Positions 36,102 through 43,806 of a stretch of DNA of 64,000 nucleotides are shown in pieces; positions within the stretch are counted from its first letter, which is position 1, and each line of letters begins with the position of its first letter. This DNA is from Epithemia pelagica (lineage: Eukaryota > Protista > Bacillariophyta), in contig OX337229.1 in NCBI GenBank assembly GCA_946965045.2, forward strand, positions 992,001 through 1,056,000. Direction: 5' to 3'. A program made the position numbers and the translations under genes. The notes beneath the pieces are model-generated. The model ran no database searches and was not told the origin of the DNA. It saw only the letters and a program-made list of their open reading frames with translations.

Positions 36102-39100
36102 ATGTCAAGAGTTTTTCGATTCTCGACCATGACACAAGAAGAAGAAGGGGACGTGAATCTGCGCTTGTCCGAGACAGCCAAGAAAGAGGATCATGAATCC
36201 CAAGGAAGTCGTAAATCATCAAGAATCGAAGATGAACTGAAACCGATAAGTTCGGAAGAAGAAGATGATAATGATGTACCAGGACAAACTCCAGGATCCA
36301 GAACCTTGTCGACGGCTCCTCCAGCATGTACATCGTCTCGTTTCTTTTCGCCTTATAGGACGTTGGGTATCGTGAGTAGTGGTAGCCCATTCTTTCTGGT
36401 GCCACATGACCATTCAGGAAATGCAATGGTGGCTTTGCCCATTGGCGATCGATTTCAGTTTATGCGCACGGATCATTTAAGGCCCTCCCTTGTGAGTCAA
36501 TCCGTTCCAAGCAGTTTGACTGGAGGGAAACATAAGAGAAGCGGACGGCAAGAAATTTCTCATATGGTCACCGATGCCACTTTGTCTATATCCGTTGTGG
36601 CCCATGGACGACGACCTGGTGGCTCGAAAAGCACCTTCTTGGACTCTTCATACTATGCCGATCGAATATCCTTGTTTTCGAGAACACAACCGCTAGACAC
36701 CAAGTCTCTTCTTGGAAACAGAAAGGACTGGTGTATTCAAGATCTGGTTCATCTTGGTCGCGTGAAACAACGAATGAGTGGTGAAAAAGAAGGAAAATTG
36801 GAAAATGTTGCAGTGGTCGCAGTCATTCTGGGTCGCTTAGACTCTGCACAGGAGACGATGCAAAGTGTTCCGGTCGTTGGTGATGATGATGATGACGACA
36901 ATTCAACAGAAGAAGGTGGCTCTGATAGCAGCGAAAGTGAAGGTGACGATGATTCCTCATCCAGCGAAGATGATGATGACGACCCTCAATGTCATTGTGA
37001 AGTCGTCGTCGTGGTTGCCTCTCGCAATGACATGACGATCCAAAATCGCATTCCTCTGTCTAGTGCCCCCAATTTTTCTCCCCTCGTCGCAGTTCATCCT
37101 TCAACTTACTTGAACAAAATCGTTGTGGCAGGCTATGATACCGTCAAAAGACGAGCAGCCATGATTCTTTTGAATATACGCTCGGGAAAAATCATACACA
37201 CATTTCAATGTCTGAACTCGTCGTCTAAAGACGGTTCCAGGATTACAACTCTTGCTCAGTCTCCGGCCGTGGATACAGTTGCGGTAGGGACAAATCATGG
37301 AATTGTCCACTTGGTAAACCTCCGTCATGACAAGAAGCTCTTCTCGTTGGAGCACAAAACTAAAAAAAGCAATAAACCAACACAGATTACTTCGGTTTCC
37401 TTCCGAACCGATGCTTCAGCCTTACAGTATTCGACTGCGCCCATGGCTGTCGGACGTCAAGATGGGACCATAACAATTTGGGATTTGACGCCTCCCGAGG
37501 ATCCATCCATGGATCGCAGCATTCTTCATGAAATGCAAAATGTACATCCACCGGGTGGTATCTCAAAATTGCAATTCTTGCCTCAAGAACCGCTGCTTTT
37601 GTCAACTGGAACGCAGTCAAATGCAATTATCATGCACATTTTCGATAACCCAGACCATTCAGGAAGAATACTTCGCATGCGCAAAGGCCATACAGCGCCA
37701 CCGCGCTTTATCCAATACCTGCACCCTGGAACTGGAGCCGGAGGTGGAATCCTAGCCAATGCTTCAGATGGTACTGATGCCGCAGCTTGTCAGATATTGT
37801 CTGGGGGAGGCCGTGACCGAACTCTTCGAGTCTTTTCGACCGCACGAACCGTCTCTGACAAGGAGTATGGTCAAGGACGGGGTTTGGTGAAAAAGGCAAA
37901 GCGATTGGGAATGGAAAGCACGACAGACCTCTTGCTTCCTCCGCTCACGTCCATGGCCACCTCAGAAGCTCGAAGTCGAGATTGGGGTGATCTCGTCACC
38001 ATTCACGAAAATCACTCGTTTGCCTATGTTTGGAATACGCGGAGGGGAGCACAGTCAGGACCGGTTCTCCGACAAGAAAAGTGGAATGTTAGTACAATGA
38101 AAGTCCCGCCTCCGTCCCATACGCATGCCACGAGTGTCGCAATATCGGCCTGTGGTAACTTTGCGCTAGTTGGTTCCCGAGGGGGAAGAGTATACAAGTA
38201 CAACATCCAAAGTGGCATTCCGAGGGGCTCCTATCCGAAACACGGTGACGAAGAAGCTGAAAGAAAGAAAAATCGTTCTTTCGTCCCTGGGGATGTAGGC
38301 CGTGCTGTGAAAGCTCTGGACAAAAGCAAGAAACTCACGAGCCGACCATCCAACCTCGACAAGATGGAGCTGGATGCTGAACAGAGGAAAAAGCAAGAAA
38401 AAAGGCTGCAAAAGAAGCTTAACGATGCCTCTCACTTGGGATTTGCCGTATCAGGATTGGCAGTTGACGCAATCAACAAAACCTTGATATCAGTGGGTAT
38501 GGATGGCAAGCTGATTCTATGGAATTTGGTGACTCATTTGCCCCATAAGAAATCCCCATTTAATCTTGCCTCTCCTGCGACGAAATTGCGTCTAGTGCGA
38601 GATTCCGGTCTTGCAGCTATCGCCTTGAAAGACTTCTCTGTCCTTGTTTTTGACACCTTGACTCAATCCATAATTCGAAGGTTCGGAATCGAAGGATCAC
38701 AATCTGCTCACCAAGGGCCCATAAGTGACGTTGGTTTCAGCCCAGATGGACGAAGTTTGTATACCGCGTCTATGGACTCGACATTGCGGGTTTGGGATGT
38801 GCCAACAGATTCCTGTGTTGATTGGCTACGTTTCAAAACCCCACCGACGTCGATTGCTGTCAGCCCGACCGGAGAATTCATCGCTACCGTGCATACCGGT
38901 AGTATTGGCCTCTCTGTTTGGTGCGACCGTAGCTTTTACGAAATCGTGTACACGGAGGGTGAACCACCCAAAGAGGCAGCCCATATGGACGAACCTACTC
39001 CTCTTGCCGACCAGTGGGATGCATCTCATTCCGATGGACGAGTCGCTCATGTAAGGCCAATCCAAACACGAGAGGAGAGTGCCGTCACGGAATCAAGCGG

Positions 39101-39992
39101 TCCGCCTCAGGCAAAACACGAAGGTATCGTTACTTTGTCGGGACTCGCGCCATCGCACTGGAAGAATCTTTTTAGCTTGGAGCTGGTGAAACAAAGAAAC
39201 AAACCTAAAGAGGCCCCGAAGAAACCTCCTTCTGCTCCATTTTTTCTTCAGTGGCGAGCTGGAGAAGCCGTTGTACCTGGGGAAGATACTAAATCGCAAG
39301 ATGAAGAAGGGGGCGAATCGAAATCCGAGGATTGGGCCGGTGTATGGAGCGATGACGACGGTGATGGTGACGCTGGCAACAATGCTTCCATAACTGAAGC
39401 GCAGTTATCAGAACTGGTTCGTGAGGACAAGAGAAGAATTGGGTCCGATGAAAACGATGATAAACCACCTTCGCAGAAGAGAAGAAAAACAGTTCGGCAC
39501 GCCCGTTCACACCTTTCATCTCTTCTCTTGACATGTAGTGATGAACAAAAAGAAAGTCCCGAAGAACAGAAGAGAAAGTACAGTAGAGTGAGTGAATACA
39601 TCGCTACTCTTGGACCGTCGGCGATTGACGTTGCGCTTTCGACTTTATGTCATGGTCAACATGATCTCGAGGAAGGTCTACCGTTGCTAATTTTAGCTGC
39701 AGAATGGCTTCTGGAAGAGACGCGTACAAGAGAACGTTTTGAAGCCGTTAACGCATATCTTCACCGCTTTCTCCACCTTCACGCTTCAATCGTTGCTGGG
39801 GTTGACGACAGCCCAGGTCCCCGTAGTGACTCAGAAGACGGCAGCAATGTTCACGAACATTCCGAGCAACTGAAGCAATTGAGAATGGTTGTATCTGAAC
39901 TACGGGGGCAGCAGTCTGAATCAACTATCGCGCTACGGAACAAAATGCAGAAGGCAACTTGCATGCTACGTCATTTATCGAGAATGGTTTAA
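36102..39992 (+). CDS. UTP21: U3 snoRNP-associated WD-repeat protein UTP21/WDR36
   Basis: FFSPYRTLGIVS at the N-terminus, HPSTYLNKIV, QSPAVDTVAVG, multiple WD repeats (ITIWD, LRVWD), and C-terminal W..L..LELVKQRNKPKEAPKKPPSAPFFL. Start is 36102 or 36129. Confidence 0.93.
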   Translation: MSRVFRFSTMTQEEEGDVNLRLSETAKKEDHESQGSRKSSRIEDELKPISSEEEDDNDVPGQTPGSRTLSTAPPACTSSRFFSPYRTLGIVSSGSPFFLVPHDHSGNAMVALPIGDRFQFMRTDHLRPSLVSQSVPSSLTGGKHKRSGRQEISHMVTDATLSISVVAHGRRPGGSKSTFLDSSYYADRISLFSRTQPLDTKSLLGNRKDWCIQDLVHLGRVKQRMSGEKEGKLENVAVVAVILGRLDSAQETMQSVPVVGDDDDDDNSTEEGGSDSSESEGDDDSSSSEDDDDDPQCHCEVVVVVASRNDMTIQNRIPLSSAPNFSPLVAVHPSTYLNKIVVAGYDTVKRRAAMILLNIRSGKIIHTFQCLNSSSKDGSRITTLAQSPAVDTVAVGTNHGIVHLVNLRHDKKLFSLEHKTKKSNKPTQITSVSFRTDASALQYSTAPMAVGRQDGTITIWDLTPPEDPSMDRSILHEMQNVHPPGGISKLQFLPQEPLLLSTGTQSNAIIMHIFDNPDHSGRILRMRKGHTAPPRFIQYLHPGTGAGGGILANASDGTDAAACQILSGGGRDRTLRVFSTARTVSDKEYGQGRGLVKKAKRLGMESTTDLLLPPLTSMATSEARSRDWGDLVTIHENHSFAYVWNTRRGAQSGPVLRQEKWNVSTMKVPPPSHTHATSVAISACGNFALVGSRGGRVYKYNIQSGIPRGSYPKHGDEEAERKKNRSFVPGDVGRAVKALDKSKKLTSRPSNLDKMELDAEQRKKQEKRLQKKLNDASHLGFAVSGLAVDAINKTLISVGMDGKLILWNLVTHLPHKKSPFNLASPATKLRLVRDSGLAAIALKDFSVLVFDTLTQSIIRRFGIEGSQSAHQGPISDVGFSPDGRSLYTASMDSTLRVWDVPTDSCVDWLRFKTPPTSIAVSPTGEFIATVHTGSIGLSVWCDRSFYEIVYTEGEPPKEAAHMDEPTPLADQWDASHSDGRVAHVRPIQTREESAVTESSGPPQAKHEGIVTLSGLAPSHWKNLFSLELVKQRNKPKEAPKKPPSAPFFLQWRAGEAVVPGEDTKSQDEEGGESKSEDWAGVWSDDDGDGDAGNNASITEAQLSELVREDKRRIGSDENDDKPPSQKRRKTVRHARSHLSSLLLTCSDEQKESPEEQKRKYSRVSEYIATLGPSAIDVALSTLCHGQHDLEEGLPLLILAAEWLLEETRTRERFEAVNAYLHRFLHLHASIVAGVDDSPGPRSDSEDGSNVHEHSEQLKQLRMVVSELRGQQSESTIALRNKMQKATCMLRHLSRMV

Positions 39993-40114: not shown

Positions 40115-42868
40115 TTACTGCAAGAAGTACTTTGAGCCAGATCCTGTCTGCACCAAGTTGCCTGGTGCAGCATTGCCTCGGATTGGTGATGTCGTGATCT
40201 TTGTGCCGCTCTTGAAATTCTTGGATCCGCTGATGAACCCTGTAATTGAACCATCAGCGTTCTGCTTCCAACGAGCCAGAGTTGGTACACCAGCAGGCGC
40301 TTTCTTTGGAGCAGCTTTCTTGGGTGCTGCCTTTTTCGCTACTGGAGTAGATTTCCTTCCGGACGAGGGGAAGAGACTCAACGTTCCAGGTCGGTTGGGG
40401 ATGACAGGTTCACTCTTCTTCTTTGGAGCCGCACTTCCCCCACCAAACAAATTCAATGTACCGGAGCGATTTGGAATGACAGGCTCTGGTTTCTTTTCTT
40501 CTTTCTTGGTAGTGCCGAAAACACTGAATGTTCCCGAACGGTCAGCCGGTTGAGGCGGGGGCGACTTTTTCTTCTCGCCACCGCCTCCAAAGAAAAGATT
40601 CAAGGTACCAGGTCTGTCAGCTACAGCTTCGGGAGAACGGGGTTCAGCCTTCGACGCCTTCGCTGGAGTGATAGGAGCAGGTTCAGGAGATCCAAAGAAC
40701 GAAAAGGCGGGCTTAGGAGCTGGAGCTTTGATGGGAGGGAGTTTGACCGGCGCCGGAGTCGGTTTCGGAGCAGATGGTGACCCGAAGAAGGAGAATGCAG
40801 CAGGCGCTGGGGCTGGAGCAGGGGTCGGAGGAGCAACGGGTTGTGGTGCTGGCTTTGGTGACGATGGAGATCCAAAGAAGGAGAATCCAGAGGGCGCAGG
40901 GGCCGGAGAAGCGACTGCTGGAGGAGCAGGCGCGGGAGCAGGAGCCGCTTTCTTTGCTGGAGCAGGAGACCCGAAGAAGGAGAATGGAGTCGACGGCGCG
41001 GCGGGTTTCTTTGCGGCGACTGGAGCGGGAGCGGGAGGTGCAACGGTCGGAGCGGGAGCTTTCTTCTCGGCGGGAGCAGAGAAGAAATCAAACAAAGAGA
41101 AGGATGGTTCAGCAGCTTTAGGTGCGGGAGTAGCGACAGGTGAGGCCTTTTTCACAGCCTTTTTGACGGCGACAGGGGTCGGAGCAGGAGCGACCTTCTT
41201 GACGGTTTTCTTTGGTTCTTGAGAGGAACTTCCGAAAAACGAGAAGACAGGGCTGGGTTCCGCCTTGGGTTTGGGTGCAGCTGGTGCAACTTTCTTGACA
41301 GCTTTCTTGACAGGAGCCTTCTTCGCTGGTTCGGACGCGGAGAAGAAGGGCAGAGGAGAAGCTTTCTTTGCAACTTTCTTCGCCGGTGCTGCCTTGGGCA
41401 TGGAGAGGAGCTGTGTCTTTTTAGGCGCAGGAGGAGCTTGCTTCTTCTTGGGGAGGTTGAGTTCAAACGAAAACGGAGAGAACGATGACTTCTTAGGAGG
41501 GGCGGCCCGTGCAGATGACGAAAGAATTTGCTGTTGTTTACGCTCCCATTCTTGTGCCTTCTTACGGGCAACCTCTGCCGCTTTTTCGGACAAAGCCCGT
41601 CTCTCCGCGACTTGTCTAGCCTCTTTTTCTGCCTGTGCCTTGGCGGCGGCGATGGCGGCCGCTGCCGCAGCACTAGCAGCCTTTTCCGCCTCCCGTTGTT
41701 GAGCCGCCTGACGAGCACTACGTTCTTTTTCCAAAGCCTTGCGACGTTCCTCTTCTTCTTTCAAAGCACGCTTTCTCTCTTCGGCTTGCTTCTTGACCAT
41801 TTCAGCTTTGGCTTGTTGACGCTTCTTTTCGGCTTCCGCCATTTTCGCGCGAGCTGCTTCTTCGGCCTCCTGTTGTTGACGGACTTGTTCGGGGGTCAAC
41901 TTTTCGAACAATTCAAACGATTCAAAGGTCTCAATAAGACGTGGAAGTGGTTTGTTTTGCAAGGCCTTAAACTCCTCTTCGGTGCAGTCAGCAAATTCGT
42001 TCAAGTCCATGGCTTTGCCTGTTTCCTTCGCAAATCTTTCCATGGTCATGTAGTTACGAACAAACGCTTGGTAACGAGTCTCATCTGGTTCTTTGCCAAA
42101 TTCTCGGCACCATTCGAGGTAGGCAGATCTCGCCTTGGCCTCTCCAGCGATATTTTCAGTTTCCAGTTCACCACCATCGGCTGCAATACCTTCCATCGAA
42201 TCCAAGGCCACCTCAAGTTCGTCGACGCTTTCCAAACCGAGTTTCCTTGCGAGAGCCTTGCGACGACACACCACAAAATCAAGGTTAAGAAAACGAATCA
42301 ACACTTTCAACGCTGCAAACCGAACCAATCATTAACGCTAGATGACAAGTCGCCTTACCTCTTCCTCTTCTGCCAAGGCATCTGCCGCATCCTTAAGGGC
42401 ATTGCTGGCTTCCGACTGGGACTGCGCCGCATCGAGCGCTTTGCCGAGCACATCGCCCGTTGTGGTAGCACCTTCCCCAGACATTGCCACCATGTATTCC
42501 TCCTCCGTATAGTCTCCATACTCATTCAATTTCATCAAGGTTGGAATTTCCGAACCTTCTTCACGCGCCTTCTTCTTGGCCACCACATTGGCCACCGTGA
42601 TGGCTTCGTAGTTGGCCTTGAAGACCAGATACCGGTCTTCGTCGTAGTCACCCTTTTCGAACTCGACGCGCCACTCATCGTACGCCAATCGAGCGGCAGC
42701 GTCGTACGGGATTTTAACATCCGTGCCAACGCTATCGGCCACCATCGACATGAATCCAACATGGTTGCGTGGGATGCCCCTCAATTTGTGGTTTTGCTGG
42801 GCAGACGGCACAAAGGCCGAGGCACCGGACACTGCTAACAGCGCAAGTACCGAAGATGCAAATTGCAT
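40115..42868 (-). CDS. Plastid-targeted 883-aa repetitive protein: two I29-like repeats, coiled coil, FSFFGS-repeat linker and C-terminal beta domain (PyShell/Shell-like)
   Basis: Exons 42868-42359 and 42256-40115 (phase-0 GT-AG intron). MQFASSVLALLAVSGASA-FVP is a bipartite plastid signal. See the finding for motif details. Confidence 0.8.
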
Positions 42869-43806
42869 GGTTTTGCTTCTCTTTGTGTCTTCGTTTCTCC
42901 ACGACACTGTGTGCTGCAGTGCTACTATACCACTACAAACTACAAGCCGTTCTTCGAAATGGTGATGTTGGATGAGAGAGGGGATGGTCAATCGTTGGGG
43001 GTGGTGGCTAGTGGACGCATTTCATCAAACCACATTCCAGATCATCACTGACGTCGCGAAAAGATCGCACCGATGAGTTCAACCGTGAGTGGTGTTACAT
43101 AGCGAGAGACGGTAACAGACGGACAGACGTCCTCGTCATACCATAGATCGATGACGTCATGGAAGCGAAAAGTCAGTTGACATTCGGAAGCTCCGATGAG
43201 ATTGTCGGTTGTCGGTTGACCCATGGACCGTGGGCAGTGGTTTCACCGACTCGGAACTTCCCTTCGAAAAGATTCTCCCAAAATGGCGGCCGTCGTACCG
43301 AAGGATCCTAACCCAATATATCAATACAAAAACAGTGAACTCAAGGAGCCATTCATTCGAACCGCTCACAAGGCCTTCCCATTCACAAGGCCACCCCTTC
43401 GGTTCTCTGAAACAAGGAGTCCGTACGAACGAGTCCGTTCCATCACGCTGTGAATGAATCTCCATCATCACTGTGAATGAAAAAATGAATCTCCAAGATG
43501 CGTGTCCACAAAATAACATGGAGACCGATTCTATCCCCAAACATTTGGTGACCGACAAGATGGAAAAGAACCCCGGGAAAGGTATCCATTTGATTAGATG
43601 ATGACGGTGGCTATTCTCGTGAGAATTTCGATTCTCTTAAACATAACAATAATGTGTGCGCTATTGACTCTACAACCAGCATCGGACGACCATTCATCCA
43701 TGAGCTCCCACCGACATAATTTCATAGTTGGACAGAGACGTCACGATTGACTTTATCGTCTCCATTGTACAACATCAATATCACACAACGCTTTGTCAAC
43801 ACGACC

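Follow-up and report, generated by a model that had tools for sequence, protein, structure and literature searches.

Gene structure and features

The subject of this study is a gene located on the minus strand of a DNA stretch of 64,000 nucleotides (nt) from the diatom Epithemia pelagica (contig OX337229.1, positions 992,001 to 1,056,000), referred to below as the window and used for all coordinates. The gene extends from 42868 down to 40115, is made of two exons separated by a single intron of 102 nt, and encodes a product of about 883 amino acids (aa). In this product a plastid-type presequence, two I29 (cathepsin propeptide) domains, a charged segment, a disordered region carrying regularly spaced Phe clusters ('stickers') and a small beta domain follow one another. 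The features are listed below, the coding parts first.

42359..42868, minus strand: exon 1, 170 codons, ATG at 42868; supported by the open reading frame (ORF) and by alignment with the N-termini of 15 orthologues
42257..42358, minus strand: intron, GT..AG, 102 nt, phase 0; GT at 42358-42357, AG at 42258-42257
40118..42256, minus strand: exon 2, 713 codons; supported by the ORF and by 32 homologues, best E 1.6e-148
40115-40117, minus strand: stop codon, ending exon 2
42815..42868, minus strand: putative endoplasmic reticulum (ER) signal peptide, residues 1-18, cleavage between ASA and F; read from the sequence, targeting deduced from the diatom ASAFAP rule
42731..42814, minus strand: putative transit-peptide-like stretch, Phe first, free of acidic residues
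42494..42664, minus strand: I29 domain 1; Pfam PF08246, E 5e-4, 20.8 bits
42161..42241, minus strand: acidic linker LGLESVDELEVALDSMEGIAADGGELE; many invariant columns in alignment A5
41969..42115, minus strand: I29 domain 2; Pfam PF08246, E 1.7e-4, 22.3 bits
41513..41896, minus strand: charged Ala/Glu/Lys/Arg/Gln segment, probably helical from its composition
40292..41506, minus strand: polycationic disordered region, rich in Pro/Ala/Lys and bearing 12 Phe stickers, delimited by composition and motif positions
41228..41245, minus strand: FSFFGS motif 1
40967..40984, minus strand: FSFFGS motif 2
40868..40885, minus strand: FSFFGS motif 3
40778..40795, minus strand: FSFFGS motif 4
40688..40705, minus strand: FSFFGS motif 5
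40592-40615, 40517-40540, 40445-40468 and 40370-40393, minus strand: four R[PS]GT[LF][NS][LV]F motifs
40118..40291, minus strand: C-terminal 59-aa domain of five predicted beta strands, SANTA-like in fold; AlphaFold2 (AF2) predicted local distance difference test (pLDDT) 93, and 93-97 in a longer model

Two minus-strand ORFs, 42338..42991 and 40115..42328, span the gene, and homology searches were run exon by exon. The exon junction, ...DALAEEEE followed by ALARKLGLESVDELE, aligns without any indel to transcriptome-derived orthologues such as those of Entomoneis and Amphiprora in MMETSP. A second in-frame AG is found 9 nt downstream of the intron end; splicing at the first AG gives the sequence that matches the orthologues. 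These ORFs and the collinear junction bear out the position assigned to the gene in an earlier note on this DNA, from which the intron was absent. Judging from reading frames and alignments, this is a nuclear two-exon gene and a genuine diatom gene.

The same searches returned 32 homologues, the best of them (E 1.6e-148) at 48% identity, and the whole architecture is common to them. All those bearing a name are diatoms. Pennate genera are represented by Entomoneis, Amphiprora, Amphora and Mayamaea, centric ones by Cyclotella, Stephanocyclus, Stephanopyxis and Skeletonema; the nearest sequences with a name come from Entomoneis and Amphiprora. No orthologue from P. tricornutum or T. pseudonana appeared by name in the homologue and cluster look-ups.

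Predicted targeting and architecture of the protein

The signal peptide ends in ...VSGASA, is followed by FVPS and continues into about 28 residues devoid of acidic side chains. The ASAFAP rule describes a known plastid-targeting signal of diatoms. Its elements, a signal peptide, an aromatic residue at position +1 and a transit-like stretch, were all recognized by reading the sequence. The ASAF-type signal announced in the earlier note is therefore present, and it is conserved as well: a site of the type [A/G]-x-A/F-x-P, cleaved before the Phe, and the acid-free stretch are found in nearly all full-length orthologues. As this is a classical diatom plastid presequence, import into the stroma is the natural inference and the most likely fate of the protein.

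A secretory-pathway or cell-wall protein, associated with biosilica and using its Lys clusters in the manner of the silaffin and cingulin lysine motifs, has to be weighed at this point. The signal peptide and the Lys-rich KxxK runs would suit such a protein, and the secretory route is the usual one for I29 domains. Conservation of both the Phe at the cleavage site and the acid-free stretch, seen in nearly all full-length orthologues and again in many members of the wider family described below, argues in the opposite direction, as does the lack of Ser-rich silaffin-type regions. This destination is considered highly improbable.

Beyond the presequence, charge is distributed as in a dipole: the isoelectric point (pI) is about 4.3 for the N-terminal half and above 10.5 for the disordered region together with the end domain. 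The acidic half contains the two I29 domains, one per exon, which had been overlooked in the earlier note. Both score just below the Pfam PF08246 cut-off of 24.4 bits. The orthologue profile of domain 1 (A6) matches papain-like zymogen propeptides in the PDB (5ef4, E 2.9e-4; 8zlq), and that of domain 2 (A5) matches the triticain-alpha zymogen 8zlq (E 3.7e-5) and bromelain 6u7d. The domains are also alike (hhalign probability of 99.3% for A5 against A6), and a precomputed PF08246 match is present on most orthologues, with up to 63 bits among relatives. On the evidence of these profiles both are true I29 homologues, an assignment that is solid at the family level. The linker between them is nearly invariant, with the consensus LGLES.EELE.ALD...GI..DGGEL.

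Such homology raises the alternative of a regulator or chaperone of papain-like proteases, in which the I29 pair would act on a C1A peptidase, by inhibition or tethering, and the rest of the protein would position it. CTLA-2 and BCPI, which are free-standing I29 proteins, act as protease inhibitors, and I29 is joined to the beta domain once more in P0165 and P0194, whose architecture is a different, paralogous one (see below). In real propeptides, however, the segment after I29 fills the protease cleft; here its counterpart downstream of domain 2 lacks conservation, so that protease inhibition is doubtful. No peptidase C1 domain was detected in the gene by Pfam searches nor among the scanned family members, and such a role would not account for over 60% of the protein. 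The alternative is accordingly held to be improbable.

The charged segment that follows had been described as an Ala/Glu/Lys coiled coil. The segment is indeed present, with a single Pro or Gly among 130 residues (exon-2 residues 121-250); the coiled coil is uncertain, as only 13 of 128 residues (exon-2 residues 121-248) are strong hydrophobics and heptad occupancy is weak. With 21 opposite-charge pairs at i/i+4, the segment may instead be a single helix of the ER/K type.

The disordered region, or spacer, covers exon-2 residues 251-655, i.e. about 400 aa rather than the roughly 350 aa first estimated, and is composed of 90 Pro, 76 Ala, 59 Lys and 30 Phe among other residues, without any Trp and with a net charge of +48. 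Its 12 Phe clusters are 24-48 aa apart. They include five exact FSFFGS motifs, spaced by 87, 33, 30 and 30 aa, as well as the variants FSPFSF, PFFSA and FSLFDFFS; the four R[PS]GT[LF][NS][LV]F motifs follow at intervals of 25, 24 and 25 aa. Every motif quoted in the earlier note was recovered, and so was the sticker-spacer layout it had proposed. At least one FSFFGS arose in only 2 of 20000 shuffles of the region. No DNA tandem repeat was found beneath the motifs, which therefore appear as conserved short linear motifs instead of the product of a recent duplication. In an AF2 model of the last 174 aa, the spacer part is devoid of secondary structure (pLDDT 50-65).

Among orthologues, the spacer is conserved in character and not in sequence. 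It contains 5-11 stickers, 21-31 Phe, almost no Trp or Tyr and a net charge of +28 to +74, with a median sticker spacing that is mostly 25-48 aa.

ORFs overlapping the DNA that codes for the Pro/Ala/Lys-rich stretch (window positions 40621-41718) are present on both strands, for example 40668..41222 on the plus strand (184 aa) and 41152..41718 on the minus strand (188 aa). They translate to low-complexity strings rich in Gly/Ala or Arg/Leu and look like by-products of a biased coding sequence, not like genes.

The C-terminal beta domain

The compact domain quoted in the earlier note is located at 40118..40291 and is the sole copy in the window according to a six-frame scan with a hidden Markov model (HMM). 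Two profiles were built for its study, A1 from 27 orthologous domain copies (mean column identity 70%) and A2 from 125 diverse copies, the window's own copy being part of both. The domain had been likened to the beta fold of the diatom pyrenoid-coat proteins PyShell/Shell. An atomic model is available for TpPyShell1 (PDB 8WQP), in which a pair of conserved regions, named CR1 and CR2, of eight strands each build two 16-strand sheets (PyShell paper). The HMM and Foldseek comparison with PyShell that had been proposed was performed and gave no similarity. When A1 and A2 were compared with PDB chain sequences, no PyShell match was obtained at E<=10, the presence of 8WQP in the searched set being unconfirmed. 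A two-copy family member of 267 aa (P0163) gave no match in the PDB either, the limits applied in these sequence searches being E<=10 or E<=0.01, and no PyShell chain occurs among the listed matches of Foldseek, VIA-wide and VIA second-look. With the profile, two-copy-member and three fold searches all empty, and with five strands in the predicted domain against eight per PyShell region, the resemblance was rejected: at every level testable the modelled end domain is not a PyShell fold.

The nearest fold is that of the SANTA domain of M18BP1 (9r6h), retrieved by Foldseek with a probability of 0.94-0.98 and an E of 0.06, and by VIA with a Z of 4.2 (52 aa, 2.7 A). In VIA it is practically level with the beta-barrel of DNMT1 RFTS (Z 4.1), and the ESM Atlas fold search leads to a SANTA cluster with a template modelling (TM) score of 0.70. 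Sm/Lsm and ribosomal barrels are also among the fold matches, at Z of about 2. The predicted domain is therefore described as SANTA-like in fold, membership of the SANTA family not being claimed.

These neighbours, and the composition of the spacer, bring in the possibility of a scaffold associated with nucleic acids, belonging either to the plastid nucleoid or to RNA granules. Resembling histone H1, the Lys/Ala/Pro tail would be the part that binds DNA or RNA, and the beta domain would act as a chromatin- or Sm-type barrel. In line with it are the net charge of +48 with its AKK/PKK-type runs and the fact that the closest folds, SANTA and DNMT1 RFTS, are chromatin modules, followed by the Sm/Lsm and ribosomal barrels. 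All of these structural matches are weak, however, and the conserved Phe motifs would remain without a role; the spacers of many other family members are Ser/Thr-rich and not basic, and Pfam searches of the gene detected no nucleic-acid-binding domain. Such a scaffold is judged unlikely.

Other candidates were discarded. Searches with the single end-domain sequence gave noise, namely the designer propeller Scone-R in the PDB and Colicin_Ia in Pfam (E 0.06). A protein-language search of the Atlas returned only hypothetical phage proteins at 0.78-0.83, under the useful level. Profile A2 matched the C-terminal domain of human DNAJB6 weakly in the PDB (E 0.32, 23 aa). DNAJB6 has Phe/Ser-rich repeats ahead of a small beta domain; the likeness was set aside as probably due to chance, its structure being in none of the fold-search lists.

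A large family of beta domains in diatoms

A profile search of 1.84 billion representative sequences with the end domain retrieved 1038 clusters at E<=1e-3, 678 of them at E<=1e-10. All the members that bear an organism name are diatoms, and in many full-length proteins of the family the N-terminus is a signal peptide with F, W or Y after it. A local hmmsearch found 2-6 copies of the domain per protein in 149 listed proteins. No Pfam model was found for the family, and literature searches on the end-domain family, on I29 or SANTA in diatoms and on the gene identifier returned nothing. From these searches the family appears to be large, undescribed and, so far, seen only in diatoms.

A recurrent unit can be recognized in its members. 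A charged helix precedes a motif of the type K-(P/A)-G-A-T-I-S-L-G-F-x-F-G, which is separated from the domain by a Ser/Thr/Pro spacer of 20-40 aa. A strict T[ILVF]S[LIVF] occurs within 60 aa upstream of the domain in 126 of 323 copies, with a peak at 25-38 aa. The four RxGTLxLF motifs of the window are of the same kind as the family motif GT-x-S-L-F-G, located 20-40 aa upstream of the domain.

The only partner domain recurring in a Pfam scan of 77 full-length members is I29, in four proteins. Four proteins of 1040-1251 aa (P0165, P0193, P0194 and P0197) display a second architecture, with I29 and two copies of the beta domain each, and three proteins of this architecture have a signal peptide ending in ...FSFA before F or Y, or in ...VFSY before Y. 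As far as these sequences tell, the pairing of I29 with the beta domain has arisen or been kept more than once. The combination of I29 with a spacer whose Phe motifs resemble the Phe-Gly (FG) repeats of nucleoporins was found in no Pfam model and nowhere in the searched literature.

At the other end of the size range, P0163, P0117, P0179 and P0150 (262-293 aa) consist of a plastid-type presequence and hardly more than two domain copies. A GT(R/F)(V/S)(I/V) motif stands ahead of each copy.

The upstream neighbour of the gene in the window, at 36129-39989 on the plus strand, codes for a 1287-aa WD40 protein with Pfam matches to the WDR36/Utp21 beta-propeller. WDR36/Utp21 is a nucleolar rRNA-processing factor.

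Proteomic data and the pyrenoid

The sticker-spacer layout had led to the proposal of a tether between the pyrenoid shell and the Rubisco matrix. In its broader form, this explanation makes the protein a pyrenoid component that would link PyShell to the matrix or condense form ID Rubisco, the end domain binding or mimicking the shell. The plastid presequence, the very basic disorder and the regular aromatic motifs are those of the EPYC1/PYCO1 design principle (review PMC13655443), and members of the family occur in centric diatoms, where no Rubisco linker is reported (Nam et al.).

Published data for T. pseudonana bear on this proposal through THAPSDRAFT_4439, a protein of 998 aa annotated as 'Inhibitor_I29 domain-containing' in the supplementary tables of Nam et al. 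It is a probable relative and candidate orthologue, linked to the present gene by annotation and length; the Cyclotella orthologue, of 970-995 aa, carries the same UniRef name. In a co-immunoprecipitation (co-IP) with rbcL, its spectral counts are 7 and 9 in the controls and 1 and 3 in the IP, a depletion; a second rbcL set reads 5, 6, 10 and then 4, 2, 1, the order from controls to IP being assumed. With green fluorescent protein (GFP)-tagged baits the counts are at background level. Those obtained with Shell1 (11, 5, 5) are slightly above the controls (6, 3, 3; 3, 3, 1; 4, 1, 0) and speak mildly for the pyrenoid. Counts are zero with DPC3 and DPC4; WD scores lie near 0.08-0.10, and AvgP equals 0, with BST2 and cbbX. 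DPC1-4 themselves, four uncharacterised pyrenoid components, are proteins of 188-512 aa with other annotations. For this candidate orthologue, the proteomics argues against a role as a partner of Rubisco or of the shell.

The sequence of the E. pelagica protein adds to these objections. The end domain has no PyShell likeness in sequence or in fold, neither PYCO1 sticker (KWSP, GTGYNP) occurs, the spacer contains no Trp, and the stickers are separated by 24-48 aa against the 60 aa or so expected by Nam et al. The shell-to-matrix tether is thus left without direct support, since the end domain is not PyShell-like and none of the Rubisco, Shell and DPC baits enriches the candidate relative. A pyrenoid role of this kind is considered decidedly unlikely.

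A proposed plastid scaffold or adaptor

The reading that best accommodates the whole architecture is a multivalent scaffold or adaptor of the plastid; its probability is put at roughly 0.45. The end domain would dock to a partner common to the whole domain family. The Phe motifs of the basic spacer would engage in numerous weak contacts, which would be cohesive in the FG-like manner or made with an acidic partner; given its charge, the spacer would preferentially attract acidic molecules, for instance Rubisco, nucleic acids or the anionic lipids of thylakoids. The charged helix could serve as a spacer or oligomeriser, and the I29 pair could retain one more partner, perhaps a protease of the papain-like kind. 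The gene model, the domains with their conservation, the extent of the family and the lack of PyShell similarity are results of the comparisons made; we infer the plastid location, the disorder-driven multivalency and all of these binding partners from the features described above.

Several observations weigh against the scaffold or adaptor. Plastid targeting is a prediction from a sequence rule. The structural matches of the end domain to SANTA and RFTS are weak (Z of about 4), and the Pfam SANTA model (PF09133) matched none of the 27 and 125 domain copies at E<=10. The AF2 model of the last 174 aa leaves the four RxGTxxLF motifs unstructured and undocked on the end domain, so that an interaction in cis between motif and domain is not supported. 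Finally, alignment A5 shows no conservation in the segment after I29 domain 2.

A more specific proposal, by analogy with the shared Rubisco-binding motif of the Chlamydomonas pyrenoid, would be that the end domain and the GATISLGFxFG-type motif constitute a docking or address code specific to diatom plastids. Dozens of otherwise unrelated proteins would use it to attach to one substructure, of which the periphery of the pyrenoid, the penetrating thylakoid and the nucleoid would be examples. Within that system the I29 protein would be a client or an organiser, large and multivalent. Such a code is regarded as doubtful.

Diatoms fix about one fifth of global CO2, and much of their plastid proteome is unannotated. 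The analysis removes a tempting but unsupported link to PyShell and provides, in its place, a protein conserved across diatoms in which papain-propeptide domains are combined with an FG-like polycationic spacer, an architecture open to experimental testing. It also draws attention to a beta-domain family of more than 1000 clusters, apparently restricted to diatoms, lacking a Pfam model and often associated with plastid presequences. Knowledge of the partner of the end domain could show in what way a substructure of diatom plastids is organised. Localising the family would be informative in centric diatoms, which have no known Rubisco linker, though the proteomic data argue against a Rubisco role.

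Comparison with known systems

Among pyrenoid proteins, PyShell/Shell (TpPyShell1, 8WQP) is, like the present protein, of diatom origin, plastid-targeted (by prediction here) and mostly beta in the part compared. Its two 16-strand sheets contrast with the single 59-aa unit of five predicted strands found here, and no likeness in sequence or fold is detectable between them.

The Rubisco linkers EPYC1, CsLinker and PYCO1 share with it a basic, disordered chain in which short repeated stickers alternate with spacers, and a plastid location (predicted in the present case). There is no homology with any of them. The stickers are based on Phe at intervals of 24-48 aa and are neither helical nor of the PYCO1 types KWSPRGGS and GTGYNP, both of which are absent; the disordered chain carries, in addition, folded I29 domains and a beta domain, and the candidate relative is not enriched in the Rubisco co-IP.

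The I29 domains resemble those of the PF08246 family, including CTLA-2 and BCPI, by their profile match and by the signatures W..(F/Y)..(K/R)..Y and LN.(F/Y).D.T.EE(F/Y). They differ in forming a tandem duplicate in a predicted plastid protein, with no attached peptidase and with a fusion to a long disordered tail. The end domain can be compared with SANTA (M18BP1/KNL2, 9r6h) and DNMT1 RFTS for its size, a W near the start and T.SGS.Y.L at the end. The structural agreement reaches a Z of about 4 only, no Pfam SANTA match exists among the 152 domain copies, and the nuclear chromatin setting of these modules contrasts with the predicted plastid context.

The last comparison is with the FG repeats of nucleoporins, where Phe motifs of the FSFG/FxFG kind are regularly spaced in a disordered and charged chain, as are those described here, a likeness that suggests cohesive multivalent contacts. 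The present protein differs by its plastid presequence, its FSFFGS or GTLSLFG motifs and the lack of any nucleoporin domain, and the parallel would be one of mechanism alone.

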